Below, in pieces: positions 1,300-63,985 of a DNA stretch of 64,000 nucleotides. The notes beneath the pieces are model-generated. The model worked only from the letters and a program-made list of their open reading frames with translations. It did not search any database and was not told the DNA's origin. The DNA comes from Orbicella franksi (taxonomy: Eukaryota), in NCBI GenBank assembly GCA_964199315.1, contig OZ116708.1:2108001-2172000 (forward strand). The letters are read 5' to 3'. Every line of letters begins with the position of its first letter. Position 1 is the stretch's first letter. A program made the translations under genes and the position numbers.

Positions 1300-4200
1300 A
1301 TGGCTGACTCCAAGCAAAATAACACTTCAGTGTCAACTTTTGCCACTTTCTTATTAGTAGTCTACTTCATGTCTTCATCGCAAGTTGATGGAGATCTTCT
1401 TGTTGATCCTACGTTGATTGGGCAAGAGCTGCAGTCTATTGCGACGAACGCACTCGGTGTGGACGAAATGCAGGTAAGCAGAAGGCTTCAATAACAGATT
1501 TGTTTTAGTTGGATAGCAACGTTTGCGGTCAATTCAAAGCTCAATTTCAAAAGCTCAAATTTGAACATTAGAAACTTTGAATTCAAATTTGCGTTGACGC
1601 GAGTGAAATCAAATTTAGGATCTTCTAGTAGCAAAAGCTCGCGCTCAGGTTTGATTGACCATTTATGGGCAGTTATAGAATCAGAGTTAGTTTACTAAAG
1701 TAAACGTCTGTAATTGATGTTTTAGAGATGCGAATATCCAACCTGATGAAACAGTTGACACACACATTGAATTATTTATAACTGCTCAGCCATTTAAACC
1801 ATTTGTTTGTTAGACTGGAAGGTTTGCGGTGGACTGCAAGCAGTAAATAACAAGCTCTAGGTAATTTAACGTGTTCTACATTTCGAACACTGCATGCATT
1901 TACTGGAGGAAAGTGATAATTCTTCTCTTTCATTTTCGAAGGCTTAACCTCAGAAATATGTTAACGTGTACGTATAATGAATTCTATGCAAATAATCTCT
2001 CTATCGGTCATTATCAGGCTTGAAAGTAAAGATAAGAATTTTGCATAAGTATGAACATGGACGGTCATACTTATGCGAAATTAAAAATAAAAATTGTAAG
2101 CTTTTATGAGTTTGTTTGTCATCATGAAAAGATCAAAACAAGACTTCTTGCATGTGAGGCATTCGATTTGTTTCGGTTTCTAAACATGAGTCTGCACAGT
2201 TGTAGAGATATTGCGTTACGTTATACTGCACGTGCCCTAGCCCGTGTTATTTTGATCACCAGTTTGATTTCAGCCAATCAGATGCTTTGTATGATTATTT
2301 AATTTTGTAACAATTTAAGCAAAAGGACCGTCTGTATTTTGGGGTCCTGCATTGTGTGCAACACTGAGCGAATAAATCACTTAAAGCTCTTTCTTTGTTG
2401 TACGTTATTACACATCGATTTCGCTACATGGTGTCAGAAGTAGGACGGTCTAATCACACGCCTAAGGATGACTGACTCTCCAGCACAAGCACAAGCACAA
2501 GCAGTACAAGCAGGTACGTCACAGATTTTTGTTCCGCCGTCAAATTTGCCGCCGCCTAAAGCGCTAAGCTTTGACGACAATTTAGCCACGACATGGAAAT
2601 CGTGGAAACAAGCATGGAAACGCTACGAAATCGCCACCAGCGTGCACAAACAGGAAGGTGTTGTTCGCGTCTCGACTCTATTAAGCATCATTGGCGAGGA
2701 CGGTGTCAAAGCCCATGACACCTTCACGTGGAATGAGGGAGAAGACCAAAATGACATCGAGTTAGTTTTGCAGAAGTTCGATCAATTCTGTGCCCCCAGA
2801 ACACAAGTTATCTATGAGCGCTATCGTTTTAACAATAGAAACCAAGAGCCAGGCGAAAATATTACCAGCTACCTTACAGAGAGGCGAACGATCGCCAGAA
2901 ATTGTGCACATGATACAATCACGCCAGATGAAATACTGCGTGACCGCCTCGTGTTGGGCATACGTGACGATCGCGTACGCGAGAGACCTCTCCGTTTAAA
3001 CGATCTGACCCTTCAACGAGCCGTGGACCAAATCAAATCTTCAGAGCAGACCCAACAGCAGGTAAAACAAATGACCGGAGGAGACACGTTGGTCCACGCA
3101 TTGAATAAATCTGGAAACTCTGATCATGCTGAAGACGACAAGAAAGAAAACCACCGAGAAAAGAATGTTTCAATTGTGGAATGATCCATGGACGCGACTG
3201 CCCAGCGTATGGAAAAACATGTTTCAATTGTGGAAGAAGGAATCACTTTGCGCATAGATGCCAAGCTTCATCACGAGGAAGGAGGAACAGAGTCTCGACT
3301 GTTCATGAAACCGCTGATCCGAAACAAGATCCATACTACATCGGTTCAGTTGCTGAGAACAAACCCCAGGCACGGATGGCTGTCATCAAACTGCAAATCT
3401 CTTCGCCTACACCTGAGACAGAAGTTCAGTTTCAAATTGACACCGGATCTCAGTGTGACATACTCCCCGCCCGGATATACAAACAGGTGATAGGAGACAC
3501 TGAGCTTCAGCGTCTCAAACCTTGCCAAAAGGAGATCGTTTCGTACACAGGAGAACATCGCAAAATCACCGGCAAAGTCAACCTCCCCGTTTGGTCTGGA
3601 AGACATCGAAAGTCACTTGATTTTAACATCATTGATGGCGATTACCGGCCAATTTTGTCATTAAACACAAGCGTTGGCCTTGGCTTTGTAAGTCTGCACA
3701 ACTGCGATGTCCGAGCAATCCACGTCGACTCCCCCTCCACCACCCTGCAAGACGAATTCACAGATGTATTCGAAAGATTAGGCGCCCTTCCAGGAAAGTA
3801 CCAAATCGTTATTGACGAAAACATTCCACCATGTGTTCATGCCCCGAGACGAGTGCCAGTGGCTCTGCGACAGCGCATCAAAGAAAAGCTTGACGAGCTG
3901 GTTGAACGTAAAGTGCTCGTGCCAGTCACGAAACCAACTCAGTGGGTATCCAGCATGCTGGCTATAGTGAAACCGAACAAGGTACGGATTTGTATTGACC
4001 CAAAAGACCTCAACCGCGCGATACGTCGAGAACATTACCAGCTGCCCACCATCGACGAAGTCGCATCCCGATTAGCAGGCGCCAAGAAATTTACCCTCTG
4101 TGATGCCAAGGACGGTTTCCACCAAATCCTTCTGGACGACACGTCTAGCTATTTGACAACGTTCAACTCGCCTTTCGGACGTTACCGTTGGGCACGTATG

Positions 4201-7200
4201 CCGTTCGGCATATCCAGTGCTCCTGAAGTCTGGCAGCGACGAATGCACGAGTTCGTTGAAGACCTCGAGGGCGTTGAAGTCATCGCAGACGATTTTCTCA
4301 TCGCTGGCTTTGGTGCAACCGATACAGAGGTCAATGCCAGCCTCGAAAAGAATTAACGTGCGTTCCTTCAAAAGTGCCGTGAGTGGAACCTCGAACTTAA
4401 CAAAACGAAGTTCAAGCGAACCCAAACTGAAGTGCGATTCATGGGCCATCTCCTGACCCCGGAGGGCCTGAAGGCTGACCCATCCAAAGTGGGAGCCATC
4501 TTAGAAATGCCTCCACCGAGTGACGTAAAAGAGCACAAGAGATTCCTTGGCATGGTCAATTATTTGGCCAAATTCCTGCCCCTATTGTCTGACATGACGG
4601 AACCATTGAGAAGACTAGATGACAAGGAAGTTGAATGGTGCTGGCTTGAGCAACACCAGAAAGCATTTACCACCATCAAACAGTACTTGGCCGATGCTCC
4701 GGTATTGAAATACTATGACGTCAATGAAGAAGTCACGATCCAATGCGACGCTAGCGAGACAGGTCTGGGAGCGGTTCTTATGCAAAAGGGACAACCCATT
4801 GCCTTTGCGTCCAGAGCTCTGACAGATACAGAAACCCGATACGCACAAATCGAAAAGGAGTTATTAGCAATTGTGTGGTCAGCCAACAAGTTCGACCAGT
4901 ATATACTGGGACGCGATTGTGTGCATATCGAGTCTGACCATGAACCACTGAAAGCGGTCTTCAACAAGCCAGTTCACAAGTCGCCAAAAAGGCTTCAGAG
5001 GATGCTGATGGCTCTACAGAACTATTCTTTGGATGTCCAATACAAGAAAGGAGAACTCATGTGGATATCCGATGCCTTACGTCGCGCCTACCGCAACACA
5101 ACTGAGTTTGTACAGCATGACACAAGTCTCGTCTGCTCAATTGAGGAAATTGACCATTCGGAGAACCTCTCTATCGCCCCGTACCGAATCGCCGAATTCA
5201 GACGCGAGACAGCGAGTGATGCCGTCATACAAAGTCTAATTGCGTCAATAAAGAGTGGATGGGCGCCGTCAAAGAAACAGTGTGACCCGGTGCTTACACC
5301 GTACTATGACAGGCGAAGCGAATTCTTGGAGGACAAAGGATTAATATTCCTTGGGGAACGGCTGGTTGTACCTACATCCCTGAGGAAAGAAATGTTAAAG
5401 CAAATTCACAGGTCACACATTGGAATCGAAGGATGTCTCCGTCGTGCCAGAGAAGTCTTGTACTGGCCACTCATGAACGCCGAAGTGAAAGATTTTATTT
5501 CCAAGTGCTCAATCTGCCAATCCCATAAGCCTGACCAGTGTCGTTAAGACATGCAACCTTATCCAGTACCGCCACGCCCTTGGTCAATGCTCGCTGCTGA
5601 TCTGTTCGAGCTGGGACAACAGCAGTTCTTTCTTCTGGTGGACTATTGGAGTGGGTTCTTTGAAGTACGGGAGGTAAAAGTGGCAACGTCCGCCAGTGTG
5701 ATAGCTGCATGTAAAGTCCAGTTTTCACCACATGGGATACCCGACGTGCTAATCACCGACAATGGATCGCAGTTTGCGTCATCAGCTTTCACTGCCTTCG
5801 TGAGCGAGTGGCAGTTTGAACATCGTACCTCCAGTCCTCGTTATCCCCAATCAAACGACCGCGCAGAAAATGCCGTGAAAACCTGCAAGAATCTGATGAA
5901 GAAAGCAAAGGCAGATGGACAGGACCCCCTGTTAGCCCTTCTGGATTGGCGCAACACACCAACAGAAGGGATCGGTACATCACCGGCTCAGAGGCTGATG
6001 GGACTCCGTACTCGAACCTTGCTCCCTACACATCAAAAACTCCTGCTGCATTCCGGTCACAATGATACTGCAACCAGACTGGCTGGTCGCAAATCGCGAC
6101 AGGTGCGTCAGTACAACAAGAAGTCGCGACCCCTTGAACCACTGAGATATGGACAGGCCATCCGCATGAGACTCCCCGGAAAACCGGAAAGGTCTCTGGG
6201 GACATGTACACGTGTTTTGAAAAACAGGTCTTATGAAGTCGAGGTATGTGGGAGACGTTATCGTCGAAACCGTCGACAACTGAGAATGACACCTGAAGTT
6301 CTTCCGCCCGGTAACCTACAGGAAAGTGAGTTGCCTGACCCTCTCCCGAAACAGTCCCAGAAGTTGAGGCTAGAGACCAGTCAGATCCCCGAGCAAGAGA
6401 CAGCTGAGCCACTGGTAGCCAGTCGTAACCCCAACAGTGGGGCTCACACTGAACCTGAAGTGGAGCTAGTAGAGGTGCTACCACGCCGTTTAGAACGCAG
6501 GCGTTGTCCGCCTGTATGGCAACGAGACTATTACATGACGTGATTATCTCGTGATCTTGTAATCTCAAAGTAAACTGAACATTTATCATTGGAGCCTTGA
6601 ACTTGAACTTTCAGTTTTTTTGTTTTTTTGTTTTGCTTTTCTATTTCTCGTTGCATTTAATCTTATATAAAGAGGGAGATGTAGAGATATTGCGTTACGT
6701 TATACTGCACATGCCCTAGCCCGTGTTATTTTGATCACCAGTTTGATTTCAGCCAATCAGATGCTTTGTATGATTATTTGATTTCGTAACAATTTAAGCA
6801 CAAGGACCGTCTGTATTTTGGGGTCCTGCATTGTGTGCAACACTGGGCGAATAAATCACTTAAAGCTCTTTCTTTGTTGTACGTTATTACACATCGATTT
6901 CGCTACAACATTGCGAGCAACTGACGGCGGTTGAAAGACGGTGGGTAGTAAAAGTAATATAATTCAACATTGAAGTGAACGAATAAATATCTACAGAAGC
7001 AACAAATTTGCAAATGTAACTAGATAGGATAGGTCAATACACAGGGGCATCCAACGATCTGTTCCATAAAACTATGTTCCTCATAAATCCTGCAGGTTCA
7101 TCTAGAACATTTTATTTTATTCATTTTGTTTAGAAACATTTTGAAAGCCTTCAATACCATGACCAACTCATATCAGAAGATGACATCATTAACTTGGCCG

Positions 7201-10200
7201 GAAAGCTTCGTAACAGGTTTACGAGAAGGTTTGATATTGCAAAACGCCTTCAGAAGGCAGTTGAGGAATCGTACTCCAGGACAATGAGTACCGCGCCACA
7301 AAAAGAATGCTGCCTAGTCAATAAATCGACCCTGACGTACGATGCACGGTTTCGTTCCAAAGTCGACCTAGACACTATCTGCCTGAAAATTTCTGGTCAT
7401 GTTCCTGAAAATCCTGGATATTTAGACCACAGATTTTTCGAGGAAACGAAAGCCATTTCGGAGGAACATACTTATGTCAAGTGGCAGTACTTCGGATCAG
7501 AGGAAGGTGTTATGACCAACTTTCCAACATATGATGATTCTGAACCATGTGACAGATACGATCCTCGTTACAGACCTTTTTATGTGGAAACTGCTACTCC
7601 TGAAGCGAAAGATGTGGTGCTTGTTATGGATACAAGCTGGTCTATGACTGGAGACAAATTAAGGGTCGCTAAAGAGGCTGCAATAACAGTTTTAGATACC
7701 ATGAATCCAAAAGATCAGGTAAGTAATATTCAGTTATGTTTGAAAAGAGGGCAAGTCAGCTTTGTCGTTTTAGAGAAAGACGTTCCCAAATTATTGAACA
7801 AGGGCCAAAACTTCCGGGTGCAGGTCGAATAACATTAATATTTTGCACCTTTTGTTTGGCAAGGAATGCAGTGCAGATTGCACGTGCATTTCCTACCAGG
7901 AATATGGCCACATTAATGATTGTAAATGTAAATGTAAATGTAAATGCAAATTTAATGTCAAACACAGGAAGTGCTTGCGCGATCACCCGAGCCAGAGGCT
8001 CATGATAACTAGTGCTTGACAATAATCCAGATCGAATTGGAATTTGGAAATGTTTTTGAGGAGAGGGGAAAACCGGAGAACCCGGAGAAAAACCTCTCGG
8101 TGTAAAGAATTGAGAACCAACAAGAAGCTCAACCCACATATGACGCTGGGTCCGGAAATCGAACCCGGGACACATTGGAGGGAGGCGAGCGCTCTCACCA
8201 CTGCGCCAACCCTGCTTATCACACATCACGAGAATACCCCTGCTGAACGACCTTCTGAAAGGTCGTCCCCCCACAAGTGACTACAAATGATGGTTTCTAC
8301 AACTATTTCCATTCATCTATTCACTGGCTTACGTTAAGAGTGAGGTTAATTTTCCTTGCTCCAGGTTACTTGATTTTCGTCGTTCTAAACTGATCTAACC
8401 ACGTGGGCCACGGAGTGTCATGTGACTCTTTTGACCCAATGATTTTTAATTTTAAGGTTGGCATTGTTTCATTTGTGGGGGACGTCAAGACGCCACAAGA
8501 TGTTGACTGCTACAGTGAGCAGTTAGCTCTTGCAATTCCTGCAAATATAAGACATTTGAAGGACTTCGTCGATAAACAACACGCTTCTAATGGTAAGTAA
8601 ATGGCAACGTACCTGACTGGATAAAGGAGTCGACTTTCCCACGCTGCAAAAAACGAATGATCCATCTGATATTCGTATAGTGCGTAGTTACACCACCTAT
8701 GTAGTTGATCTGTAAGGTTGTCACGACACCTTTCAGTTTTTTGAAACATGATTTAAAAATTTAACTTCACATACTCGCCGCGGCAGTTGATTTAACTGTA
8801 AACTGCAAATTCAAGATTGATAAATAGCCAAGCCGTCAAAAGAATCTATCTTCTGTCCCCAGTTTTACCGGTTATTGTCCTATCTGCAAGCAATGACAGA
8901 ATGGTTTCTCCAAGAGAGTTCGTTGATGCTCTTATTTCTTGCTTTACAGGTCAAACAAGATTCATACCGGCTTTTGAGAAGGCGTTCGAGTTACTGAAAG
9001 GCTCGGTCTCTAAAAACTCAGGGAAAAGCAAAAAACGAGTTATTTTATTTCTGACGGACGGGGATCCCTCGGATTCCAAGGCTGACTTGTTCGGGATCAT
9101 TAGGGACCGGAACTTGGAGCTCAATAACTCTGTCATCATTCTAACGTACGGATTTGACAGGGCATACCAGGAAATTCTGATAGATATCGCCAACCAAAAC
9201 ACGACAAAGTATGGCGTACCAGCAAATACGTCTGTCGGAGACATCGCGGTAATGTAGCAAATGTAACGCATTGTTGATGCGCCACTCCCACTCATAGGCT
9301 TATTCAGCAGACCAACAGGGGATTGGGGCAGAAAATCCCCAGGCTGACCTTTAGAACTTTTTTAGTATTTAGGGATAAAAAGCCGCCCAGATTTGCGAAT
9401 TTGGTTGAAATTCAATTGAGAACAATTTGGTTTGACATGTCATTGTAATCAAATGCGATATTTTTAGGGAGAATTTAACGTTCCCGTGGCGACGGTATTT
9501 TGAGCGACATTTGACAGATATGAAACTTTTTGTGTTTTCTTTATCAAAATCTGACTTGCATGCAGGACTTTGAGGTAGTTTCGATTTTCTTAATTTTGAG
9601 TCATTTTAATTGTTTGTCGAGTGCTGCTCTACAGTGATCGATATATGTTTTTGAGATTTCCAAAATCATGCTAAAAATGGTGACAATGTCCCTTTAAGTA
9701 CTTGAGGTGGGTGCTTTTTGGTTTCATAAATTTAGTATGGCATTTGAAGACAACATTTTCAAACTAATTAATAATTTCATCAAGTCTAAACAAAGGAAAT
9801 CATGACCGTGACAGTGTTTGGATATCTTATCTTAATTAGCATAGATTTTTACGACTTTTATTTCCGTTTTTCTTCTTACTTTAGGTTTTGATTGAGAACA
9901 TTTATCAAACACTCAAGACAGTGTTTAACCACATTTCCAAGCACCTCAAAGTTCGTCAAAGATACTCCGCTACGCGTCGTATATTCAACTCTCTTCTCGG
10001 TGTTTGAAAATGTGGTCAAACACGGTCTTCCGTGTTTGAGATATTACTTCTCTCTGTTACTTATCCTTGAGGTTATATAATTGGACGTACCTCCAGACTC
10101 CAATACCTATATACCATACTTTAGACATTCTTGAAATTACGTAGGATCGTTCTCTCGATCATCCTTGTCTTAGAATCTGAATAGGGCAAGATAATGTTCC

Positions 10201-13200
10201 TCTTTGAGCTGTGACTCTCTCTATCTCTAGCGTGGAAGCTACACTTTTGTTGAAGATATCAGGACGCTGAGAAGCAAAATGGCCACGTATTATGCTCTAT
10301 TTGCGAAGCAGCTTAGTCGTCCAGTGGTTTCTGTACCATATGTTGACGCGTTTGGGACCGGTAAGAGAAATATAATAACAATGACAATGGCAATGACAAT
10401 GACAATGATAATCATTTTAAATTGAAATTTTAATATTCCAACACGTTTAATGTACAGAATAATGTTACAGAAGCTAACTCGTTAAAAAGAATGTCAAAAA
10501 TTTAAATAATAAAAGTAACAATTTGTAACATCGAATATCTTGGTTTTCACATTAAGTTTGTTTTGAAATTATTGTCCATGTCTTAAAAGTGAGAGCTGAA
10601 TAGAAGTTGGCGAGCTCGCTAATCTTTCTTTTTTCCTTACTCCATTTTCAGGGCTTTTAGTGTCTGTAACCCTGCCTTGCTACCATCAAGGAAGGTTTAT
10701 TGGCGTGACTGGGACAGATATCAATATTGAAGACCTTATGCCTGACATTCTTGAGTACGTTAAACAAGGCAGGACCACCTATGCTTTTATGATCATGACA
10801 TCTGGAAGGACCGTAATCCATCCACTTCTACCAGCTCCAGCTGACGCCTACGGTTACCCTATTTATATGGACATAAGGAACCTGGAACGGCCGGAGTCCG
10901 AGTTCAAGGCCATTTTTGACTCGATGGCAAGGTATGTGCATCGACGTGAATCCATGAAATAAGATTGGGATCTTCTATATTAAAGGGAAGTGCGATGGCA
11001 TAATGGTTGGTGCGCTGACCCTCGGATCGCCCGTTTTAGCTAGGGCGGTTTGTTTTTCCATTACAGACCTGGTGAAATCATCCAGAGAGTTATTATTTTG
11101 TCCATCTAAAAATTACTCATTCATATTCAAGCCACTAATTGAAAATTTAAAAGCAAGAATTCTCGGGAGTGTTATATCATGGTGTGAAATGGGGCAGCAG
11201 ACCGCCCAAGCTAAAAAGGTATATTGCGCTCTCAGCTAAGACCTTTTACTCTTGGATTTTTTGCTTTTGTATGCCTCCGTGATGTTACTGAGGACACGGA
11301 GATAAACTCGGCCTGATGTATGGTCGTTACCTCGCTTAACCTGATATATAGAGACCTTACGTTGATTTAAATCAGGTGTTTCTTTGAAAAAATACATAGA
11401 CACTTAAATAAAGTTTTCATTCATTCATTCATTCATTCATTCATCCATCTATCCCAAATCGAAAAGCCATACCGATTACTTAGCTTTAAAGAAGTTCTCC
11501 TAGTGCCGAAAGTTCTTTTTGCTTGGGGTGGAAAATTCAAGACATAATGGAGGTATCCGTGCAAGCAGGCTCTGGGAAGCTGAGCGCCTGAGGCAAGAAC
11601 ACTGTCTGGCTAGGTTATATATACAACAACAACAACAATAATTTTTATTTTCCTTCATTTTAAAATTACATGTTAGTTGGCCCGCGGATAGCAAGTGCTA
11701 ATCTAGGCGGGCCATTAATCGCTTGAACTAGATTAATTAAACAACACTGATATTAATTAAATAGCAATACATATCTGGAGAAGTTTCAAATTCGTCGGGT
11801 GATCAATTTAAATCAATTCTTCTCTTTGATTGCTCAAGAGGTGTGAATGGATCCAAATCATTCTACGCCGCCCGGTATCTACCTAACGGAGGAAACATAA
11901 CGGAAGGAGTCACAGAGACGTATATTAACTCAACATATCATTGGCGTCCTCTAGATGGCACGGATTTTTATCTTGGAGTAGTCATACCAATCTCCATGAA
12001 GAACGAAATGTTAGACACTTTGAAAATCCCAGTTGGTAGGTAAATTAGGTTTGTTCCCTTCTCTGTCTGATTGACTGACTGATTGGATGATTAATTGTTG
12101 ATTGAGTGAGTGGTTAATTGAGCGATGCATTGTCTGACTGACTGATGACTGACTGACTGACTGACTGACTTAGTGACTTACTGACTGACTTAGTGACTTA
12201 CTGACTGACTTACTGACTTACTGACTGGATGATTGGTTGTTTGGTTGGGTGGGTGATTCTTTGTTTGTTTGATTGACTGATCGATTGACTGATTGATTGA
12301 ATAATTCATTCATTCATTCATTCATTCATTCATTTATTCATTCATTTATCCATTCATTTGAGTATGTAGAGCATGTTTGTTAGAACCTCCTTAAAATACA
12401 AAAGTTGTGCTTTACTTGATAGAAGCATAAAACATGAGACCATACTGTTGACAACAATCTTTTATACCTTTCCTCAGATTACACCTTTAACTATCATCGA
12501 ATAGACCTGGCGCCAACTCAGAAGACGTGTTTAAACTTTGGACGACTAGCAACAAAGGGTAAGAACAAAATTAAACCATATATGAAGACATTTTGTCAAG
12601 AAACCACTAATTCGTGTGAACGCATGAAATTCAAACCCATTTCGGTCAGTTACTGTTGGATATTTCGAGCTCCATGCAACTTTGAACTATTTCCCTGTTG
12701 CGCTTTAAGTTCGAGGTGGCGAGATTTAACTGTACCGTCGAACCTCTGTTAAGCGGCGCCCTATTAAGCGGCCAACTTCTATTCGGCGGCCAATGGCCAA
12801 AGTCCCGGAAAAATTGTCAGCCACATACTGTAGTAAAAACCTCTTTACAACGGCCACCTCTATTAAGCGGCCGCGGCCAGCTTCTTGCCGTTCCAAGGGT
12901 GATTTTGTTTTGTTTTATACCTCTACTAAACGGCGAGGAAGATCAGATTTGAAGTGGGACGGTTTTTAGCCAGATGAAGGTAAAAGAATGGCAATGTGGA
13001 ATACTGTAAAAACACATTTTGAACAGTGTTAAATTATGACAATCACAGAACAAAGTCCGCAACGGTTTAGTTTGTTTGCACAGCACACGAGCCAGTGTTG
13101 GGTTGACAGAAAACGTCGCGTAATTGTTTCTTTGGCTTTTGTTAACGTTATGAACTGCATTATAGCTATCATTGTTCCACTTTTTTCTCCACTTGCATTT

Positions 13201-16050
13201 GTTTGTACTTATATTTAATAAACTGAAAACTGGACTGCGCCCAACGTTGCTTTCGGGAGAACCTCTATTAAAGGGTCACCTCCTTTAAGCGGTCAGTTGT
13301 CTCGTCCCTGAGAGTGGCCGCTAAATAGAGGTTCGACTGTACTTCCAAAGTAATCGACCTTAACTTCCGAGAAGCCAGAACTTCGTCGTGCCCATTCCTA
13401 TTCCATTCAATTCAAGTTTCTCCACATAGATACCACCGTTGTAAAATTTGCCCCAGACGCCTTCCTGGATCCTTATGAATATTTTGGCACCGATGAAACG
13501 GAAGCGAGTGTAAAGTTACTAACCTACTACATGATGGGTCAAGCGGGTAGTGAAGCATATTCCGAGCTAAGAGGCGGCATTCGGGACACCGTGATTGCTA
13601 CCTGGAGAGCAGAAGATTTGTGGTTAAATGCCAAGACAGAGCTGACACAATACTTGATCAAAAGATACATTGGTACAGCAGATGGAGTTTTTAGGGAAAC
13701 TCCGGGTGATGTGTTGTCCAGAGGTTATGATCCCCGAAGACGACCCTGGTACGTGATGTAACATTAATATATATATATTTCTTAATATATACACATATAT
13801 ATATATGGATTTCTGAAAACCGTGACAATTTCCAGGAAATACACAAGTTCCTTCAGTCAATCAATCGCTGCCAGTCTCTCACTACGCAGGCTACTCACCC
13901 ACCTTGCTTGTGTGGAGCTGGCTGGTTGCCGGTCATTAAGTCTCCGCAGCACAGTCGACGAAAGCCGGCAAAGGGTATGACCAGTTTTCAGCTAAAAGTG
14001 CCGCTCCCTGATTATGGCCATTGCGGCCTGGCTCGGTACCGGCTGGTAGCCAGCACCCTGCTGGGCTGTCTGTCAGAACCGTTCTTGACAGAAGCCTCCT
14101 TGGTTTTAAAGTGCCCGCAATGACCTGACGCCGACCATCGTCGATAGTCAAGCAAAAACGTTTTGCACCAGTTTTGACATCTTTTTTCATGAATCCAGAC
14201 ATACATACAATAACGAGAATATAGCATGCATGGCGCGCACAGGATAGTCGCAGTACCACATATCACATTAGGTCGTTCAGTTCCTCCTCTGGTTTTCCTC
14301 TCTCGGGCTTAATTCCTTTTAAAACTGGCAAGCTCAATCTTTTATCTCCGCTTTAAAAATCTAGATGAGTAATTTCTCTGAGATCGATTTTGCAATAAAA
14401 ACTAACGATAAATAATCACGACATTTCGATCTCTCCGAGTTCATTTTCAAGTGCGAGAAAAAATTCACAAAATTAGCATAATATGTTTCTAAAAGTAAAA
14501 ATACTTTAAAATGTCATGAACGGTAGAATGCAATAAAATATGTAAGACAAGTGACCTAAAACAATGAGACAATAGAACAATACTAATAAGAGTAAAGAAA
14601 TGATCTAAACAAATTATTTAGCACCAATTGAAACACAACTTTTGTTCAATGTAGGAAAATAGCCAGGACAGTCATTTATTCCGACACTTCCATAAACTTT
14701 TAAAAGTTTGCGCAATGTCATCCGGCTTCTTAACATGTTGCTCCCTTAAGTGTTGTCCAACTGCCGATCCTTCATGTTCTTCAATTCGTTGGTGTAGGTA
14801 AGATAAGATAAGAACTTTAGGCGACATAACCTGCATCGCACAAGTCACACTTGAAACATTGCACCACGCATTCTCTAACGGTGGTTTGTCTTCCCTCACT
14901 TTGATTTTGTCCTTGATCTTTCGACTTGTGTAGACCGTGCTAGTATCTGCGTTGATCTTTCGACTGAGGTCTACGTACTGCGTTTGCAGATTTCTGGTCT
15001 TTAAAAGGCAGCACGATTCTAATCGGAGCTTCTCTCTTCTCCGATACTTGGGTAAGTGAATCTTCAGACACTTTTGAATCAATGAATTGGCGGATGGTAT
15101 ACTGCAAAATATTTTCAGGGTAGCACAGTCGAGCAAATTTGACTGTCTTATTTTCAAAATTTTGTTTCTTTAAGAACTAAAACCAACACTGAACAAAAAA
15201 ATGCGTTCAAATTCGCGCTAAACAATTTGTTTATATCAGTTCTTTAAGCTTATTAATATCAGTATTGACTTATGTTAATTTTATATATTTTTACTCGCAC
15301 TTGTAAATGACGTCGGAAAGGTCGAAACGTTGTGACTTTTTATTGTTAGTTTTTTTAAAAAAATTAAAAATCTAGATCTGTTTATCCATCCTCAAGGATG
15401 TGTTGTTGTTGTTGTTGTTGTCGTCGTCGTTGTTGTTGTTGTAAGTATACCTCAGACGTCGATCACTGATTATTCAAGGTATTACGCTGCATTACGTCAT
15501 TCGGGATTTCTTACTCTTACAACACCATATTTGGACGCTACTGGAGCTGGAGTGGTGATAACCGCAGCCCGCGCTTTGTATCGCGGAGAGTCAAGTCGCA
15601 TTCATCAAACAAGTGATGAGGTGTTGGGGGTCATGGGAGCCGATTTTCCGCTGACCTATTTTTACAGGTATGGTATTGAAATATACTTGTTGATTGATCC
15701 TCAACAAGTAAATATTCCAGGGAGGGCCGCGAATTCAGTTAACTCCGTTTGAGGGCACCTGAGTGCTGTTAAAATTGTAATTAGATTTTCTGCAACATAC
15801 CATTCCCTGATGCTCGTTGATAATGCCACCCACCCTTGTCAAAAAACACGGGAGTATTTTGAAAGATGTTTCTTTCTTGATGTACGCAACAACTTCAGAC
15901 ACTGCACTAACTTAGACACAGAGCAGCATTCTGCCCATGCTGTACCGTGTCTGCTTCCCTTCACAATGAGCTAGGAAAACTGTAAGTTTACTGAAATTAA
16001 AAGTAAAAAAGGATGTATAGAGAAAAAGCACTCAACAATTTTATTTTACA

Positions 16051-16089
<39 letters not shown>

Positions 16090-16177
16090 CATCATCCTCA
16101 CGTAATGTTTGCTTAGAGTCCTTAGGGCCGAGACCAAACCATGGTCCTGGGGCACTAGGGGATAGCCGGTTTTTAGC

Positions 16178-16214
<37 letters not shown>

Positions 16215-25156: not shown

Positions 25157-25157
<1 letters not shown>

Positions 25158-25212
<55 letters not shown>

Positions 25213-25252
25213 CCTACTACTACTGCTGCTACTACTACTGCTGCTACTACTG

Positions 25253-25296
<44 letters not shown>

Positions 25297-25298
25297 GC
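25158..25298. repeat. (TAC/TGC)n trinucleotide microsatellite, 47 units, just 3' of the gene B stop codon
   Basis: Seen directly; it generates the spurious poly-Y/C and poly-S ORFs. Confidence 0.95.
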
Positions 25299-25301
25299 AT
25301 T

Positions 25302-41428: not shown

Positions 41429-41466
<38 letters not shown>

Positions 41467-48400: not shown

Positions 48401-50010
48401 AGGAAATAGGCCTGCGAACAGATATTATAATAACGGGACAAATCCGTTGCATGCCCCTGATCACCCACCTGGTCTTTTGGGTTCATGGTATCCAAAACTG
48501 TTTTCGCAGCTTCTTTGGCGATGTAAAGTTTTTCTCCTGTCATGGACGCACTTATGTCGACAACAAGCACCACGTCTTTAGCTTCAGGGGTGGCGGTTTC
48601 CACGTAAAATGGTCTGTAACGGGGATCATACTTGTCACATTCCTCTTTGTCGTCAAACACTGGAAAGTTGGTCATGACGCCCTGCTCTGATCCAAAGTAC
48701 TGCCACTTTATGAAGGGATACGTTTTCGAGATGTCTTTCATTTCCTTGAAAACGCCCTCGTCTAAATGGATTGGGTTTGGAGATGCGCTGCCTGAAATCT
48801 TCAAACAAACATTGTCGAGATCCACTCTTGAGCGAAATCGTACATCGTACTTCAAAGTCGATTTGTTGACGTGGCAGCATTCTGTTTGTGGTGCAGCTTT
48901 CGCTGACCTGGCGTACGAGTCCTCGACTGCTTTCTTCAGGCGTTTGGCAACCTCAAACCTTGTTTTGAACTTGTCAGAGAGTTTCACCACTAGATGTGGA
49001 GTGATGTCTTCTCCTTTTATGGTCCTTTTCTGATACTGAAGGCTGTCAAAATAATTCTAAAAGATAACAAATATGCAACAGTTAGAACACTTCACTTAGA
49101 GGATATAATAAGCCTCTTTGTATAGGAGAAGAATGTATGCATATTTTAGTCCTCGGCGGGTGAGTATAAAACGAACGTCTTTGGGAACTTGCATGAATGT
49201 GGAAAATTTAGACAACAAATGACAAAAACTGTCGGGAAAATAGTAATATTTCGGTAAGAGCTATACCAGAGTTCTATTTTCAAAGCAGAAAACGGCAAAA
49301 TTGAGCAAAAAGTGAAAAATTATCTCCCAGTCGGCGTCAGCCGGAGAGTATTAAATGACCCTCTTTGGAAACGTGCATGAATGTGAAAAAACTTTCGCGC
49401 CTCAGTGACTCATCATTTGCGTGTAGCACAACTTAATCCAATCAGTCCTACTGGACGGATTTTCAAAAGTTAATAGCAAGCGAGTTATGAATAACTGGGT
49501 AAAACCGCCAAAAATATTTCGAAATAGTTTTTTTTAAACTAAAATTGTAAAACCTAATTAATACACTGCCAAAAGGAAGAAGTTTGAGAGATATTGAACA
49601 TTAACGCTGCGACAAACTATTAACCGAGTGGTAAATCTAATCAGACCTAAACGTTCGAAAACGAAGATTAGAGGAGCTGGAAAAAGTTTTGGATGGAGAT
49701 TTTGATTATGCGGATAGCTTGTGTTTGAGCTTTTTTAAGGCTACATGTCCCTCACTCAAACCAGTAAGACCAACAGTTGAACTGATATCATGCACTCTGA
49801 CTTACAAACATTTCCTATTGTTCTTACCTGCATTTCATCCACTCCAAGGGCATCCCTCGCAAACGTTTGCAGCTCCCTTCCAATTTGAGTTGGATCAAGG
49901 AGGCTGGCACCAACTGGGCTTAATAGCAGAACGAAAACCGAAAGTAAAAGTACGGAGAAAGTTTCGCTTGCGAAGCGAACTTTTCTAGCATTCATCGTCC
50001 GCTCGATCAT
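38769..50010 (-). CDS. CACHD1: Gene C: CACHD1/alpha2delta-like VWA-dCache membrane protein, ~1455-1460 aa, 15 exons
   Basis: Exons: 50010(or 49995)-49828, 49056-48469, 48043-47899, 47407-47103, 46299-46167, 45410-45137, 44900-44704, 44031-43951, 43022-42704, 42197-42009, 41893-41550, 41343-41196, 40730-40477, 40275-40100, 39815-38769. All introns are GT-AG and the frame is intact. Motifs: DISAS, FLTDG, TM GVIVGTVIACTAVVALIVILTIL, 348-aa tail exon. Confidence 0.9.
44247..44625 (-). mobile_element. L2 LINE 3' fragment in intron 7 of gene C
   Basis: Minus strand GDRAFS...NNLPLAIRSSSSLDIFEKRGKTYLF (L2 ORF2 C-terminus) with a (TTA)n tail. Confidence 0.75.
45861..46041 (-). mobile_element. tRNA-derived SINE (third family) in intron 5 of gene C
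   Basis: Minus strand GGAGGCAGCGTGG...GGGTTCAAATCC (B box), then a GCCCCGAGTTCAACTTCTCGGC...AAATAGCCAACTGG body. Confidence 0.75.
46671..47005. mobile_element. MITE with 3-bp AAT target duplication (PIF/Harbinger-like)
   Basis: Termini AGGGGGCTTTAGCAAACCACGACGGCGAC and GCTGTCGTCGTTATTAAAACTCCCT are imperfect TIRs, with AAT on both flanks. Confidence 0.75.
48181..48370 (+). mobile_element. tRNA-derived SINE related to the 7921-8216 copy
   Basis: AGCAGGGATGGCGCAGTGGTGAGAGTGCTCGCCTCCC...GGATTCGATCC...GGTTTTTCTCCGGG. Confidence 0.8.
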
Positions 50011-56200: not shown

Positions 56201-57356
56201 TTATTCATGAGGTATTAAAGACAATAACTTATGACGTGATCTACGTTAATTAGATACCACAGCAATTTAATCAGGAAGCACATCAAATTTCCAGAAACCG
56301 GGGTGCCTTCTACACTGTTCATTATAAACTGATTGATAGTGCATATTTTCGGAATGATTCAGGGGGAGCTTTGATCATTGCATGTAAAGAACACCCACTA
56401 CGAGAACTTTAAAACAGAGACGATACATCGAACACCATGGAATGAAACGAAAGAGAAAATGAATTATTATTTATCCACACAGCTAGCTACGTTTTCAGAA
56501 CACCTCCTTCACCATGTGAAGGCAGGAGACGAAATGGTAACGGAGAGTTGTCAACTGCATTGCGGAGCAAGAGTCCTCCATGAAACGCTTCTCAAACTAG
56601 TACCCAGTGATAAATATTTTAGCGCGGTTCAAGAGTTGTTGTTCCAAAGCAAGTGTCGAAACATTGCAGTGGTACAAGTCGACAATGCACTAGACGTGGA
56701 GAGGGAGAAGTCAAGACAACTTGCATTTGCTGGCGTGACAGTCAAGAGTTCCAACAATTTGAACTGTAAAAACGAGATACAGCTTTCAGTTTCTTTTTCA
56801 ACCCGGTTTATTTCAACCTACTACCAAAATGCCTTAATTAAATACCTACTGCAAATTGATAACTACAGTAGATAAATAATACAAACTCTTTTTTACTTCC
56901 ATCTTTTATGAGACAAGCGGAATAGTGCAAATTGTCCACAAGTTCATGACAACTATTGTCGTGATCTAGATTATAGGGCTTATCTTCGGACTTGCCAATA
57001 ATACATTGTAGACTACAGCTACTGGATATCACAAACCAATGCCTTAAAATTCTTTCTGCAATGGTATCTTGGTTAGTAAAGTGATCACACACTAATAGAT
57101 ACTGGCAGGCCATGGTCTAAGAGACGGGAGCTTGTCCTCACTTTCGAGACCATAACGTTGGAGGCTATACCGATATTTTTAAGCTAGTAACAATTTATAA
57201 TTTGTCAAAACTATACTTGATACAGTTTAGCGAAATCGACACGACCGTACCGTGTTATTTATTTTGTCCTGCTTCAGACGACGCTCGCAGGTTCCAACCG
57301 TTTACTTTGTCTCGGTGTTTGGGAATGATCTTTCAAACTGGGTCCGGTGCTGCGTT

Positions 57357-60300
57357 CTAAGAAATGCACTGTACGTAGCCTTGGGGATCAAGGGCGATAG
57401 AATCACAGCTCTCGCGCTGTGACAGACCTGGCCTGCTAGAGACACATTGCTCTGTTGCTTCAGCTGTGCGTGATATCAAACTGTTATCAGACGGGTCGCT
57501 TGGTTCATGAACGGGTGAATTCAAAACAGCTGACGAAGAAGGCCCATCAGGCAGCATGTTTGTATCAGATGCAGGACTCTCTGGCTGGTCTTCCGATAGC
57601 CTTTCGCCTTCGGAGGCAATAAATGTTATGTAGCCATGAGGATCAAGGGCGATTGAATCACAACTCTCGCGCTGTCGTAGACCCGGCCTGTTAGAGTTAC
57701 TTTGCTCATTTGCTTCAGCTATGGGTGGCATCAAATGGGTATCAGACGGGCTCTTAGGCTCAGGACGTGGTGAGGGTAAGTTGCTATATTGGTGCTCCCC
57801 TTTCTCGTAAGCAGCTGCTGAGGAAGGTCTATCAGGCTGAGTCAATGGCTTGTCCTTAGATGGCCTTTTCTCTTCAGAAATTGCTGGAGGTGGAATTCCA
57901 AGAGATGCGCGTTTCTTTTCAGGAACGTCTGGTACCCCGCTGTCTGTAGAGGAGATTCCTGCTACAAAATTGGGTGGAGTAGTGTTCATGGCAGCGCCCG
58001 ATGTTCTTCTGATTGGAGACACAGGAGGCTGTGGATATCTGCTGGACTCTATCTCGCTCCTTTTCTCAGGATATGATGTCGGATAGCTTACAGATCTAGG
58101 AATGATTTGGGTGGAAGTCGTGGATGGTTTCCTTGCAGGTGGCAGGGCTGGAGGTTTAAACCGGGCTCTTATTTCATCATAAGGTGATGGCCACTGAACA
58201 GAAATTACTGAAGGTTTACGGGAAGGCTGCAACTCATCTGGATCGTCATAATCCTCATCAGATGCAAGATCCACTGGTTCCGGAAGAGGTGCCGGAGGAC
58301 GAGTAGCAATATCTGGATTTTCAGGATCGATAATCTGTCGTGTTGAAGCGCTCTTGTTTTTGTTCATGGGTGGTCCGCCTAGGTTATGGTGATGTCTTAT
58401 TACCTATAGAAGTAAATTGGAAAAGGTTTGTATGTTTAGAAAACTTAATTCTAAATGCCAGTTGATCCATTAAAAAACCCAACTCATTAGGAGCATATCT
58501 CAGTAAAAAAGGTGGCTTCCCTAGTGTTGGTAACACTCAGCACCATCTTACCTTAATATAGCTTTTTCATCCCTCACACACACAAAAAAAACAAAACAAC
58601 AAAACTCCACTCATTGTCATATGTACGCCTACATTCGACCACTTAGACATGCAACTCTGGATCCTATGATAGGCAGGAAAGAATTGACTTACCAAGATCG
58701 TTAATATCACTATTAGAGCCACAACAGCAGTGCAAGCAATCACAGTTCCAACAATAACTCCGGTCCGTCTGCCTTCATCGTCACCGACAAATTTATTTCT
58801 GGTTTTGTTAACTTGCTGCGGTTGTGACGTTACCTTTGGACCCTCCAATGGACATTGTTCCTGATCAGCTGTGCATAGATTAACAAATCAAATTGACGAC
58901 TGTTGATTTATAGATTCTTATTTTTGCCTTATGCATTGTTGACTATATCGGGAGGAAATTAAATAGCCATATTACAAGTCACAAGGTGATATTAATAGCC
59001 TTTGCATTTGCTACAAGAAACGCTGAGGCTGAAAGATGTCTTCGGGTATTTACATGGTATTACCTTCTCTGCCTCTATAGCACACTTCTGAACTAGCGCA
59101 GTAAGGTTGATTTAATGGCACGTCATCTTTGTCGTTTTTACACCAATAGCAGCCAACGACGCCTTCACATGCTTGCGAACTGTTTCTTTCACTGCAGCGA
59201 GGATCAAAACATTTTTCTAATCCTGGCGTAGGATCTTTGCATATCTTTTTAGGGACTGGCGAGTTCTGATTGCTCGTTGGTTGTATTTCAGGTGCTGAGG
59301 GTGGGCAAATAGGATCGCTTAAAAAAAAAAACAAAAACAAAAACAAAAAGAAGGGTTAATACTCAGTCACTGATAAACGTGAATCTTGCCTCCGCGTTTT
59401 TACCATTTAATCTACATGTGCCTGTCACTGGCAAATTAAGGGAGTTATTACATTCACGTAGGTCTTTTTTATCAAATGCAAAATCATCCCGAGACAGATA
59501 TTAGATTCCTAAGAATCGTGTCATGGTAGGGCTTGTTTAATCATCAGCAACGTGGAAAGTGAAATAGAACAAACATGTTTGTGGGAAAGTGATTAATTAT
59601 TCCCTATTTACAACTGTTAACTATAACAAAAGTCTCATTGTTTTACATTATCCTTTAATACAAAAAGGTACATGCATGTCTTGTTAGGTCTTGAAACAGA
59701 ATCTTCTTTCAACGAACGTTTTGTTTTCGAATTTGCGATTTTCAAACAATTTGCTAAAATGGATAACAAACCTGCTGTCGAGGAATTGACTGCGACAGTA
59801 ACGGAAGTCCAGGGGGGAGGTGCAAGGGCATTCACACGTCAAGTTGAATAAAGAACATTCCCTATCTAAAGAACAGGGGCAAGGCTCTGTAGAGCAGAAG
59901 GATTCTCTTACAGCAACCCCTGCGAATGAACATTGACAAAAGTATTAATAAAGTCTGACTGATCTACTGACTCTTCAGGTGGCTGACAGATTGAAAGAGA
60001 GACAGAGAGACACACAGACAGACAGACAGACAAACAGCCAGACAGATAGACAAACAGTGCGCTGTACAGACAAATATTTTGACCTGGGTAATCTTATGAA
60101 AAACGAACATACAAAACTTATTTGCAAACCTATATAGGCATTTGTTCCTATAATTTTTCCCAGCTGGTATTTGGAACATCTTCCACCATTTCCGAGAGCA
60201 TCGACTCCACCTGATGGTAAACTGACTTCGTAAAAGCTTTGCCTTTGAATCTCTTCCAGGTCACGGCATCCCATTTTTCTCAGGTACCCTTTTTTGATGA

Positions 60301-63300
60301 GGTCTTCTGCAACGTTCTTGTCCTTCTCCGTGATGTGCACGTACTCAACATCTGATGCTGCAGCTGATGAAAGCAAGAAGTCTTCGTGCATGATAAGGAA
60401 GCCAGCGCTGTCCATTACGAAACAGGAATAGGTCTGTGTATCTTTACACTTTGGGTAAACCTCGGTGAGTAACCTGTAAAATAGACATAAAAGTATAGTT
60501 TTATATTGTGCTATATAGATAAACGCTTTGGGTGAAAATTTGGCAAGATTTGAATTGATTGGCCAACACATGTGATAATAAATTCTTACCTGTGGAAATA
60601 AGTTAGTGGAAAGTCAGCCCCCATAACTCCAAGAACTTCATCGTTTGTGTGATGTATATGACTCGGTTCTCCTCGATACAGCGCCCGACCAGCGGTAATC
60701 ACCACTCCAGCTCCTCCCGAATCCAAATACGGAGTTGTAAGAGTTAACAAACCGGTGTGGGCCAAAGCTGTATAATACCTGAAGAAAAAGTAGTAAATTT
60801 TAACCATTGGTTAAAAATGAAGGCGCTGGAAGTGGAAAAAAATTTGCATTGTGGAGAATATTTATTGCCTATCAAATAAAATCGAGAACAAAATTGATTT
60901 TAATTTGTTCAGGCTCCATTTGACCTCAAAAGTCTGTTATTCCGCCCTCGTGCGTATACTCTAATTGGACGCTCCTGTTCCATTACAAATCTATTTATCT
61001 GATTGTTCTTTCATCATCGACTATTCGCTGGTAGACCACTATCACATACGCATGTCCAGGATAGGGAAATCAATCGTGTGCCTGGTTTAAGAAATCAGAT
61101 ACACTCGCACTCTTTTTCTATAAGCAATAGAAAAAACACCCGTGGCGTTGGAAATATACAGTGATACTATACTAAAGCAAGTGTTTAAAATCAACTTTTC
61201 AGTACAGCCTTTTTTGTGACGACATATTCTGCTGGAATCGCCCCAGAAAGTACACTAAGACGATTCCTAATGAGTTATTCTTACCAAGGTCTCTGTCTTG
61301 GGTCGTAACCTTTGTCTTCCACACTACCTGGAGTTGTTCTAAAAACTCCATTTGATGTACCAATGTATCTCCAGACCAAATATTGCGTGAGTTCCGTTTT
61401 GTCACGCAGCCACAAGTCTTCAACCTGCCAAGTCGCAGTCACTGCGTCTCGGATGCCGCTCTTCAAGCCTGGATTTCTTACTGTTCCTGAGTCGTCTTTC
61501 ATGTAAGCAGTTAGCAGCTGCACGTCAGCCTTTGTCTCATCTTTGCCTATATACTCGTATGGGTCTAAATAGGCTCCCGGAGCAAACTTTACTACAGTGG
61601 TGTCTATTAGAGAAAATGTATTATTAAACCTCATTCGGTCATTTTCGTTTTATAACAAAGTCTAATTTCTGAGGCTGTTGCTGCTTGTTTTTACTGAGTT
61701 GTGGAGTACGGTGCCGTATTTAGAGCTCGATGCTCTAACTGCCTGTGAATGTCTCAGATTGAATATGTCCTCAGTGTCTTCCTAGTATTCTTGTCAATCT
61801 AAGCTTAGCCAGACGTTCTTACAACAACAGCTTGGTATGAAAGAAAGCGCGAATGGGTGGCGCGCTGACTGTCACATTAACAGCTTTCTTTTTTCTGTAT
61901 TTTACAGTAATTCGCCCATCGCCACCTTTATCTGAAAATATATTTTGGGGAATCTGCCGGACACAAAACAATAGCCATTCGTTAAAGCCTATGATTATCT
62001 TTAACCTTATTTGCTTTCGTCTCTCGTTCTAGTGATACAGAGCACACGTCACTAAACGCATAATCCACCAATTGGGCGGTTAAATGGGCCGGCTATCTTT
62101 CAATACTTCTCTCAAACACATCTCACTCAACCAAGATACAAGTATCATGGCAGCAAACAAATTTTGAATATGAAGGTTACATCAACTAGGTGAGTGCTGC
62201 TGGGTTTTCCAGCCTGCAGAACTTTAGCTAGGGAAGAGATTCGTAAAGGAACAGGTCCCTTGGATATCCCTGTGGGATATCAAAATTGGTTTCTTTTGAT
62301 GAGTGGTGCCAGCTGCCCAAATGCCGCTCAAATGCAGGTAAAGCTATAAACGTAGAAAGCAGATTTTAGCTTCCTCCTTACTCAGTTCAGTTCCCATCAG
62401 ATTGGATAGATTCAGATCGTGAGGAAGGTCTTTATTTTGCAAGGCATTTAGTGACCGCTTTGCTCAACCTACCTTTAGCAGCATGTGTCCCAAACTGAGA
62501 ACACGGCTTCTCCGGATAATTCAGGTCAATTCGGTGATATTTAAACGTGTAGTCTATAGAAGAACAACAACGAAACCATAAAATCAACCAGTTAAAACGT
62601 TTGACGATTTATCAGAGCAATATATACTTGCTTCAGTCCGTCCTTTTCACTTAGGCTGACGTCATGTGTAAGTGCACGTTTTCATCGATCTTTGTTTACC
62701 TGGGAAACGTGCATGCACTTGATAAGAAGGGACTATATTTTCTGTTTCCGAAAATATTGCTTTAAACCGTCGTAGATGTCACAAATAATAATAATAAAAA
62801 TAATAACAGTGATAATGACAATATTCATAATAATAATGTTCATAATAATAATAATTATAAATTTATATATAGCACTAATACTATAAAATATTCAAAAGCG
62901 TTCTGCATATAAAAAGAAGCTAACAAAGTAAAACAAAGGTCTATAAAAAGCATAAAATGTGCTAGAAACACAAAAATATAAAAGGGCTTATGTAACTAAG
63001 ATGTACAAAAATTATGAACAGTCATAAGTGATATGTCTTCCCTCGTTTTTTAAAAATGTCCAAAGACGAGCTTGATCGTATGATTACGGGCAAATTGTTC
63101 CGTAAAAATAGACCGGAACGATAAAAGGCGCGGTCACCAAGTGTAGTGAGAATCTCATATTAGCCTTGTGACAGAGGAGATCCTTTATGTATTCTTGAGC
63201 CTTGAACATATGAAACCATTAACTTTAATTGATCTACTAGGAACTGCAAATGATTGATGTATTCTTATAAAAAAACTAACCTGCAGGAATTTTGAGTGAG

Positions 63301-63985
63301 GTAAGTTGATCCTCAGCATGGGAAACAGGTACAACCACACCCACAGAGAAATCAATTCCTACTAATGGCCTCCAGAAGTATCTGGAATTAACTTCTTTTA
63401 CTGTTACTCCTTCTTTCTCTTTTCCCCCTCTTGGCAGAAATCGTTTAGCAACAAATGTTTTCGATCCAGATTTTCCACTAGGAAAGAACAAAATGGATGC
63501 ACCTTGCTAAATTCAAGAGTGTCACAATATCAGCTTTCAAGACGGGAGGAATGTCCTTTACCCAATATCAAAATACTTTTTTTTTTTTCGATTCCGGTCT
63601 GTGCTATGTATCAATAGGCAAGGGTATATTCTACGGGAGGCGCTGTGGAGGAATATTGAGCGCAACAAGGAAGTGAATCAGCAAGGAGCGTACTTTAAAC
63701 CGTGAACATACCTTTTTATTGAGTAGAAGACCTCTTCGAACTCTGCCTCTGGTTCCAATGTCCTTATGTCCAGAAAAACGGGGTCCCCGTACGCATCGGT
63801 TGGAGCTGGAAGGAGCGGGTGAATTAATGTCCTTCCAGAGTTACTGATCATAAACGCATAGGTGCTTTGACCTTGATTAAAGAACGTGATATCTGACAAC
63901 AGATCATCCATGTTGATATCAGTGCCTGCCACGCCAATAAACTTTCCTTGATGAAAACAAGGGAGCGTGATCGACATAAGAAGTC
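57357..63985 (-). CDS. CACHD1: Gene D (partial, exons 6-15): recent duplicate of gene C
   Basis: Exons: 63985-63712, 63477-63281, 62553-62473, 61603-61285, 60778-60590, 60473-60130, 59919-59772, 59317-59064, 58868-58693, 58403-57357. Lengths are identical to gene C and the frame is intact. Exons 1-5 lie beyond the window. Confidence 0.9.
62784..63207 (-). mobile_element. L2 LINE 3' fragment in intron 7 of gene D (duplicate of 44247-44625)
   Basis: Same position and sequence as in gene C, so the insertion predates the duplication. Confidence 0.75.

Follow-up and report, generated by a model that had tools for sequence, protein, structure and literature searches.

In the 497-Mb genome of Orbicella franksi, a span of about 200 kb at 2.00-2.21 Mb of contig OZ116708.1 (C11 in what follows) contains eight genes of the CACHD1 family (VWFA and cache domain-containing 1). 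Their order is H, E, F, A, B, C, D and G, of which H, E, F and A are read from the + strand and B, C, D and G from the - strand. The stretch of DNA analyzed here (C11:2108001-2172000, 64,000 nucleotides (nt), "the window" hereafter) contains three of these genes complete (A, B and C) and a fourth in part (D). It is very probable that the array arose by repeated local duplication in stony corals after their split from the sea anemones, and that it encodes CACHD1-like accessory proteins, a function assigned by analogy with vertebrates.

Vertebrates possess one CACHD1 gene, unlike the eight tandem copies found here, and the number of paralogs varies among animals that branched off earlier (PMC8915833); in vertebrates, the protein joins voltage-gated Ca2+ channels and Wnt receptors. 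The coral copies, four of them with a new and conserved long tail, constitute a natural set of variants in which the roles of ectodomain and tail can be separated. Placozoans have been shown to possess single CACHD1 genes, and Nematostella an alpha2delta-like clade (PMC8980814); coral genes are already named "CACHD1-like" in the NCBI annotation. On the other hand, no description of the eight-gene array, of its placement after the anemone split or of a long-tailed subclade with an added exon was found in the literature searched, and a paper on tandem duplication in corals (PMC10236652) does not mention the CACHD1 family. The finding adds new members and one structural variant to a known family, and overturns nothing known.

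Family membership and origin of the array

The CACHD1-type identity suggested by a first-pass annotation of the window is borne out by both structure matches and phylogeny. Exon 2 of C matches human CACHD1 (PDB 8s7c, residues 101-276) with E = 5.7e-25, versus 3e-7 for alpha2delta-1. Exon 9 matches CACHD1 (residues 669-771) with 7.7e-24, and the dCache domain of the bacterial amino-acid sensor PctA with 0.004; the sole match of exon 13 is CACHD1 (8s7c residues 1027-1080, E = 5e-6). Pfam VWA and VWA_N were matched in exons 2 and 4 of A and C, and the Pfam scans gave nothing in the tails, exon 9 or exons 11-13. VGCC_alpha2 (PF08473) had no match in any exon scanned, being present only in the alpha2delta-2 control (P0160), and CACHD1_C (PF27776) is carried by the relatives P0012, P0157 and P0158. 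A search of 1.8 billion representative proteins gave 154 matches at E values up to 1e-10, with relatives in Nematostella, hemichordates, amphioxus, a tunicate, Lingula, fish and sponges. In the main tree (L-INS-i alignment and IQ-TREE, 28 sequences, 1038 columns, LG+G4), CACHD1 and alpha2delta separate with a support of 100/100, and a second tree of 70 sequences (FFT-NS-2 and FastTree) agrees.

Vertebrate CACHD1 falls in the same clade and is the best PDB match for exons 2, 9 and 13. The human and other vertebrate proteins share with the cluster a split dCache-1, the VWA domain, dCache-2, probably a Cys-rich C-terminal ectodomain, one transmembrane (TM) helix and a cytoplasmic tail. The alpha2delta subunits (CACNA2D1-4) resemble A-D in VWA_N, in a VWA domain with a metal-ion-dependent adhesion site (MIDAS), in the double dCache fold and in the weak exon 2 match given above; unlike A-D, they end in a glycosylphosphatidylinositol anchor or a very short C-terminus, and do not have the motif of the second dCache. 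Membership of the cluster in alpha2delta was rejected on the basis of the separate clade, of the missing PF08473, and of a TM helix with a long tail versus a remainder of 16 amino acids (aa) in P0160.

Whole-genome searches with C exon 2 and Nematostella CACHD1 as queries detected no CACHD1-like exon outside C11 2.00-2.21 Mb, and the flanks of the window were resolved by tblastn. To the left lie H (C11:2004981-2016100), E (C11:2046545-about 2059500) and F (exon 1 at C11:2063314, the remainder to about 2092600), all on the + strand. Extending the search past position 64000 yielded exons 1-5 of D as well as gene G (C11:about 2189700-2202948, - strand). H is strongly divergent (26-46% identity to C), with exons 10/11 and exons 13/14 fused, and its Gln/Met-rich tail of ~200 aa lies within the terminal exon together with the TM helix; it might correspond either to the vertebrate-type CACHD1 or to Nematostella P0012. 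Two weaker and distant VWA/Cache loci (C12:5263000-5268000 and C9:23997900-24005000), with 20-50% identity on short pieces, are probably alpha2delta or alpha2delta-like genes.

The IQ-TREE analysis unites A-G with an Oculina protein in a single clade (100/99) and places Nematostella P0158 (CACHD1b) as its sister (100/98). Within the coral clade two groups are resolved, (A,(B,(C,D))) supported at 100/100 and (G,(Oculina,(E,F))) at 100/99. Nematostella P0012 branches outside the A-G clade together with an Actinostola protein, all anthozoan sequences being joined at 97/97; no P0012-type ortholog was found in this genome by whole-genome search, H having no firm position in the tree. Since A-G form one clade sister to P0158, the tandem expansion is lineage-specific and postdates the split from sea anemones. 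The local expansion proposed in the first-pass annotation is thus supported, in the form of an array larger than the four genes then counted, and the tree does not reduce these genes to one-to-one orthologs of known ones.

Nematostella XP_048587905 (P0012) and P0158 are the closest full-length annotated relatives (38-43% identity), with conserved exon boundaries and, as in the cluster, an intact MIDAS. These genes are separated by 2.5 Mb of a single Nematostella chromosome, unlike the tandem array described here. Each has 14 exons, the last of which, in contrast to A-D, encodes both the TM helix and a tail of 53-69 aa. The Oculina patagonica protein ACROYT_G034416 (P0157) is 75-92% identical to E and F when compared exon by exon, and clusters with the two in the tree. 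The comparison with further corals was made on exon-2-sized fragments from other assemblies. Some of these are 87-94% identical to A (73% to C), another is 95% identical to C/D, the Desmophyllum pertusum fragment KAJ7382930 is 86% identical to B/C/D, and others show 78% to E, 66% to G and 58-63% to H. Because such fragments match single subtypes, the subtypes are older than this species, and only C/D and E/F are young pairs.

A gene of the B/C/D type with the long tail is also found at the Desmophyllum pertusum locus L030 (GCA_029204205.1, MU825910.1:172129-194283). Its annotation splits the ortholog into products of 147, 95 and 307 aa, and frame breaks in several exons are probably indel errors of the assembly; copy counts taken from the L030 annotation are unreliable because the ortholog is cut up in this way and carries these breaks. 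Public coral models of the family are fragmentary in general: the model of P0157 (1075 aa) comprises neither TM helix nor tail, and that of Desmophyllum pertusum OS493_031705 (P0004) is a fragment of 147 aa. In practical terms, the exon maps given below, RNA-checked for C, can be set beside such models.

Transcription, splicing and the C/D pair

Transcription was assessed on positions 38769-44768, using RNA contig sets from two different studies together with raw polyA RNA-seq reads from a further one. Eight RNA joints were obtained, each identical to the base with a predicted intron of C (introns 7-14, eight out of eight tested); they read CT..AC on the + strand, that is, GT..AG for gene C. 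Raw-read run X22 placed no reads on 38769-44768. Of the 2623 exon positions in the RNA-tested stretch, 94 distinguish C from D, whereas the differences between RNA and C are far fewer, with 11 of the 26 listed variants D-like. The RNA found on C represents C-type transcripts, coming from other genotypes or close species; an origin from D instead of C was considered and rejected on these same counts. The tail exon of A (exon 15) is represented in RNA runs of four studies, which contain 0.89-0.93 of its words. C is thus transcribed and spliced, and the concern raised with the first-pass annotation, that the copies might be unexpressed, does not apply to it; for A, exon 15 is present in RNA libraries, and the splicing evidence is confined to C.

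C and D are 90.8% identical in nucleotide sequence over 7.2 kb, introns included, and 97% identical as proteins. Their 3' flanks (37677-38299 and 56264-56883) are duplicated too, with ~80-93% identity at the translated level, and the tandem duplication unit would therefore measure ~18.6 kb. The closeness of the two proteins, together with the assembly gaps present in A and B, could be taken to mean that C and D (or more of the copies) are uncollapsed haplotypes or another false duplication of the assembly, or else unexpressed pseudogenes. This explanation is hardly credible in view of several observations. The two copies diverge at 9% of the positions aligned, introns included (synonymous divergence, dS, 0.05), their ectodomain is still constrained (ratio of nonsynonymous to synonymous divergence, dN/dS, 0.44), and both lie on one 28.9-Mb contig, gap-free between them. 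Each is a complete open gene, D having exons 1-5 of its own, every modelled frame is open, and spliced C-type transcripts can be distinguished from D. An artefactual origin of the C/D pair is thus very unlikely.

Ectodomains, tails and possible functions

Each gene of the array is predicted to encode a type I membrane protein with a signal peptide, a dCache-1 split by a VWA domain with intact MIDAS, and a dCache-2; the C-terminal half would comprise a Cys-rich membrane-proximal module that aligns with the Frizzled-interaction (FZI) region of human CACHD1, one TM helix and a cytoplasmic tail. The FZI domain was located in the C-terminal ectodomain of CACHD1 by Powell et al. (PMC7615972). Vertebrate CACHD1 binds the cysteine-rich domain of Frizzled and LRP6 (PMC7615972), and it modulates Cav3 and Cav2.2 according to work cited in PMC8980814. 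The cluster proteins would work like vertebrate CACHD1, as cell-surface partners or co-receptors for other membrane proteins, with Frizzled/LRP-type receptors or Cav channel alpha1 subunits as possible partners of the ectodomain. Besides, A-D would recruit cytoplasmic adaptors through RxxPxxP-like and YxxP/YDE-like motifs of their tails. The paralogs most likely divided expression domains or partners among themselves, instead of diversifying ligand recognition.

A true TM helix had been noted in the first-pass annotation, and one strong hydrophobic segment indeed stands near the C-terminus of each of A-D (Kyte-Doolittle 2.4-3.2), at the end of exon 14: 19618-19686 (+) in A, with a peak of 2.96 over 19 aa; 26252-26317 (-) in B; 40100-40168 (-) in C, with a peak of 3.23; and 58693-58761 (-) in D. 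TM helices are also found in E, F, G and H. In A-D a splice donor directly follows the helix, and the tail is encoded by a separate 15th exon, at 20051-20767 (+) in A (236 aa), 25302-26012 (-) in B (233 aa), 38769-39815 (-) in C and 57357-58403 (-) in D (343 aa each). E, F, G and Nematostella P0158 have instead the TM helix and a short Pro/Tyr-rich tail with PPxY-like motifs in the last (14th) exon. The tails of A-D had been described as Pro/Tyr-rich and of 240-350 aa. Their length (233-343 aa) and Pro content (12-16%, versus 5% in the ectodomain) agree with this, and they are Ser-rich as well, but they are not rich in Tyr (2.5-3.0%, versus about 5% in the ectodomain). The greater length in C and D is partly due to a duplication, since each has two copies of a C-terminal module (~50 aa, with LDPxGY(I/V)xxI at its end).

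The tails of A-D are probably disordered, and a search of the Atlas with the C tail gave no usable match. Tails of 158-178 aa are also present in a fish and a hemichordate CACHD1; that of the fish (~158 aa) is shorter than those of A-D and shows no detectable similarity to them. The short motifs RPPAPLPEP, Y(D/E)DPDELQ, WPSPY(D/N) and LDPxGY are conserved at the Desmophyllum L030 locus, and the A-D tail is therefore under some constraint; the tails with short motifs that the first-pass annotation had emphasized are, in this sense, shared with another coral genus.

In the ectodomain, the DxSxS part of the MIDAS lies at 7629-7643 (+) in A (DTSWS), at 33888-33902 (-) in B (DISAS) and at 48544-48558 (-) in C (DISAS). 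The complete signature, DxSxS..T..D, is intact in all eight genes, as well as in the CACHD1 proteins of anemone, Lingula (a brachiopod), Glandiceps (a hemichordate) and two sponges; it is lost in fish (DHGAL..SS) and Saccoglossus CACHD1. An intact MIDAS is therefore the ancestral and usual invertebrate state, with nothing special to the cluster about it. The degenerate site is a vertebrate derivation and does not define the family, because the site is intact in anemone, brachiopod, hemichordate and sponge CACHD1.

The amino-acid motif YxxxxRxWY, and the binding of amino acids predicted from it for CACHD1, were reported by Gumerov et al. (PMC8915833). The second dCache of A-G contains YDPR(Q/R/K)RPWY, which corresponds to the N-terminal half (YxxxxRxWY) of this motif, its C-terminal Y..D half not being placed with certainty. 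In the first dCache, W is retained by G; five genes (A, C, D, E and F) have F in its place, and the sequence in B is FDPRYRPYY. The positions of the motif are thus largely kept, in line with the retained ligand pockets of the first-pass annotation, and the motif is kept in CACHD1 across all the animals compared.

The selection acting on the cluster was estimated as dN/dS by the Nei-Gojobori method on codon alignments of A-D. Ectodomain values are 0.13 (B vs C or D), 0.14-0.16 (A vs B or C) and 0.44 (C vs D), and those of the tail are 0.35-0.39 (B vs C or D) and 1.03 (C vs D, dS 0.05). The ectodomains are accordingly under ordinary purifying selection, and the tail is fast-evolving and, in the young C/D pair, indistinguishable from neutral; no sign of a diversifying ligand-binding surface was found in the pairwise dN/dS of A-D.

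These values bear on the functional proposal of the first-pass annotation, in which the genes form a diversifying receptor family with a part in chemosensation, nutrient sensing or symbiont/allo-recognition, the dCache pockets binding small ligands and the tails signalling. The retained YxxxxRxWY of A-G, the paralog-specific changes of W to F or Y in the first dCache, the weak resemblance of exon 9 to PctA and the predicted amino-acid binding (PMC8915833) are in its favor, as is the expansion of a family with long tails and conserved motifs. We nevertheless consider the proposal quite improbable, since ectodomain dN/dS among the older copies is 0.13-0.16, with no excess of replacement changes, the orthologs of the subtypes in other corals are 86-95% identical, and the family counts just eight genes; moreover, the amino-acid motif is common to CACHD1 of all animals and not special to the cluster. 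Allorecognition loci are typically far more variable than 86-95% identity, and the selection data argue against such a role. The term "diversifying" is thus not sustained for the ectodomains.

A different alternative is suggested by the skeleton. Proteins of the skeleton of Desmophyllum pertusum, a species with at least one B/C/D-type gene, include five that are "CACHD1-like" (bioRxiv 10.64898/2026.03.24.713908), and in Acropora the tips and the bases of branches differ in three cachd1 transcripts (PMC4320547). The genes could then encode membrane proteins of the calicoblastic epithelium, serving metal-dependent matrix adhesion or Ca2+ channel trafficking, whose ectodomains end in the skeletal matrix. 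The MIDAS intact in eight of eight genes is consistent with this idea, as is the expansion, which among the species sampled so far falls with the stony corals and not with the anemones. However, the Desmophyllum skeletal proteins could not be matched to cluster subtypes, skeletal proteomes commonly contain membrane proteins that are merely trapped, and the non-calcifying hexacorals sampled are two anemones only (Nematostella and Actinostola). A role in calcification is therefore possible but doubtful, and the genes of the array are candidates for following up the "CACHD1-like" proteins of coral skeleton proteomes. A bolder version, which we regard as unlikely, takes A-D as a stony-coral innovation in which the new terminal exon gives the CACHD1 ectodomain a long SH3/SH2-type docking tail and turns a channel or Wnt-receptor accessory protein into a signalling receptor; such a receptor might respond to amino acids or matrix in the epithelium that forms the skeleton, which would tie the expansion to calcification.

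The interpretation preferred here, a CACHD1 array expanded in stony corals and encoding accessory proteins, has to be weighed against several points. RNA support is limited to C (introns 7-14) and to A (presence of exon 15), B cannot be shown to be intact across the gap at 32749-32983, and the models of E, F, G and H rest solely on tblastn pieces. H, moreover, sits on a long branch of the IQ-TREE phylogeny, with no firm position. As regards function, the match of exon 13 to the FZI region is short (53 aa), and Frizzled, LRP and Cav binding would be extrapolated to cnidarian CACHD1 from the vertebrate proteins. The tail motifs are presumed to be SH3 (RxxPxxP) and SH2 (YxxP, YDE-) ligands from general consensus patterns.

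Exon maps, assembly gaps and repeats

Models of A-D were built from six-frame open reading frames (ORFs) and Pfam matches, followed by tblastx between the four regions, which gave colinear conserved blocks. Frame-preserving GT..AG pairs were then listed for each exon junction, and one solution per junction had an identical phase across the copies. Phases are identical in A, B, C and D, and exons 7-10 measure 197, 81, 319 and 189 nt in all four, so that the single exon/phase architecture ascribed to the paralogs in the first-pass annotation holds. The limits it gave, 1300 and 63985, are also exact, the former being the ATG of A and the latter the first base of D exon 6, and the reading frames that it called intact are open in all models, in B on either side of its gap.

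Gene A (1300-20767, +) has 15 exons and 1317 aa, with a frame open throughout. Its exons are 1300-1473, 7134-7718, 8457-8592, 8950-9248, 10231-10360, 10652-10931, 11839-12035 and 12478-12558 (exons 1-8), and 13430-13748, 15479-15667, 17168-17514, 18085-18202, 18770-19011, 19547-19686 and 20051-20767 (exons 9-15). Gene B (35834-25302, -) has 15 exons and about 1350 aa: 35834-35655, 34400-33813, 33215-33071, 32748-32458 (abutting the gap), 31168-31036, 30733-30460, 30101-29905 and 29476-29396 (exons 1-8), and 29028-28710, 28557-28369, 28262-27919, 27637-27490, 26926-26664, 26439-26252 and 26012-25302 (exons 9-15). Gene C (50010-38769, -), gap-free, has 15 exons and 1460 aa: 50010-49828, 49056-48469, 48043-47899, 47407-47103, 46299-46167, 45410-45137, 44900-44704 and 44031-43951 (exons 1-8), and 43022-42704, 42197-42009, 41893-41550, 41343-41196, 40730-40477, 40275-40100 and 39815-38769 (exons 9-15). 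Of gene D (-), the window contains exons 6-15 (63985-57357), namely 63985-63712, 63477-63281, 62553-62473, 61603-61285 and 60778-60590 (exons 6-10), and 60473-60130, 59919-59772, 59317-59064, 58868-58693 and 58403-57357 (exons 11-15); its exons 1-5 lie outside, up to C11:2177928.

Two assembly gaps affect these models. The one at 19285-19415 is located within intron 13 of A (donor 19012, acceptor 19546), and B, C and D have no exon between exons 13 and 14. Because the gap is intronic and exons 13 and 14 join in the conserved phase, A is continuous in frame across it for any true gap length. The other, at 32749-32983, covers the 3' part of intron 3 of B with its acceptor and, judging from C, some 11 nt at the start of exon 4; the readable part of this exon borders directly on the gap.

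An orphan relic resembling exon 1 is found at 296-430 (-), with 50-52% tblastx identity to exon 1 of B and C. It comprises a signal peptide and LLDPTL..GVNEM, contains an in-frame stop, and stands head to head with A exon 1, ~900 bp away. As no matching exon 2 was found to its left, the relic is probably the remnant of a partial duplication.

Intron 1 of A (5.7 kb) consists for the most part of a full-length Ty3/gypsy-type retrotransposon (2198-6907, +), with long terminal repeats of 231 nt (2198-2428 and 6677-6907) that are 97% identical. Its ORFs are in four pieces: gag (2468-3184), a zinc knuckle with reverse transcriptase (3181-4356), a third ORF (4432-5547) and the integrase (5551-6543). 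Microsatellites of the TAT/TAC type, which give poly-Tyr ORFs, occur at 16042-16247, 24924-25367 and 62782-62859, in introns and in the region between A and B, and a TGTC-type repeat that reads CLSVCLSV is present in intron 11 of B, C and D (e.g., 41417-41477). These microsatellites and TGTC repeats are non-coding and swell the ORF lists.

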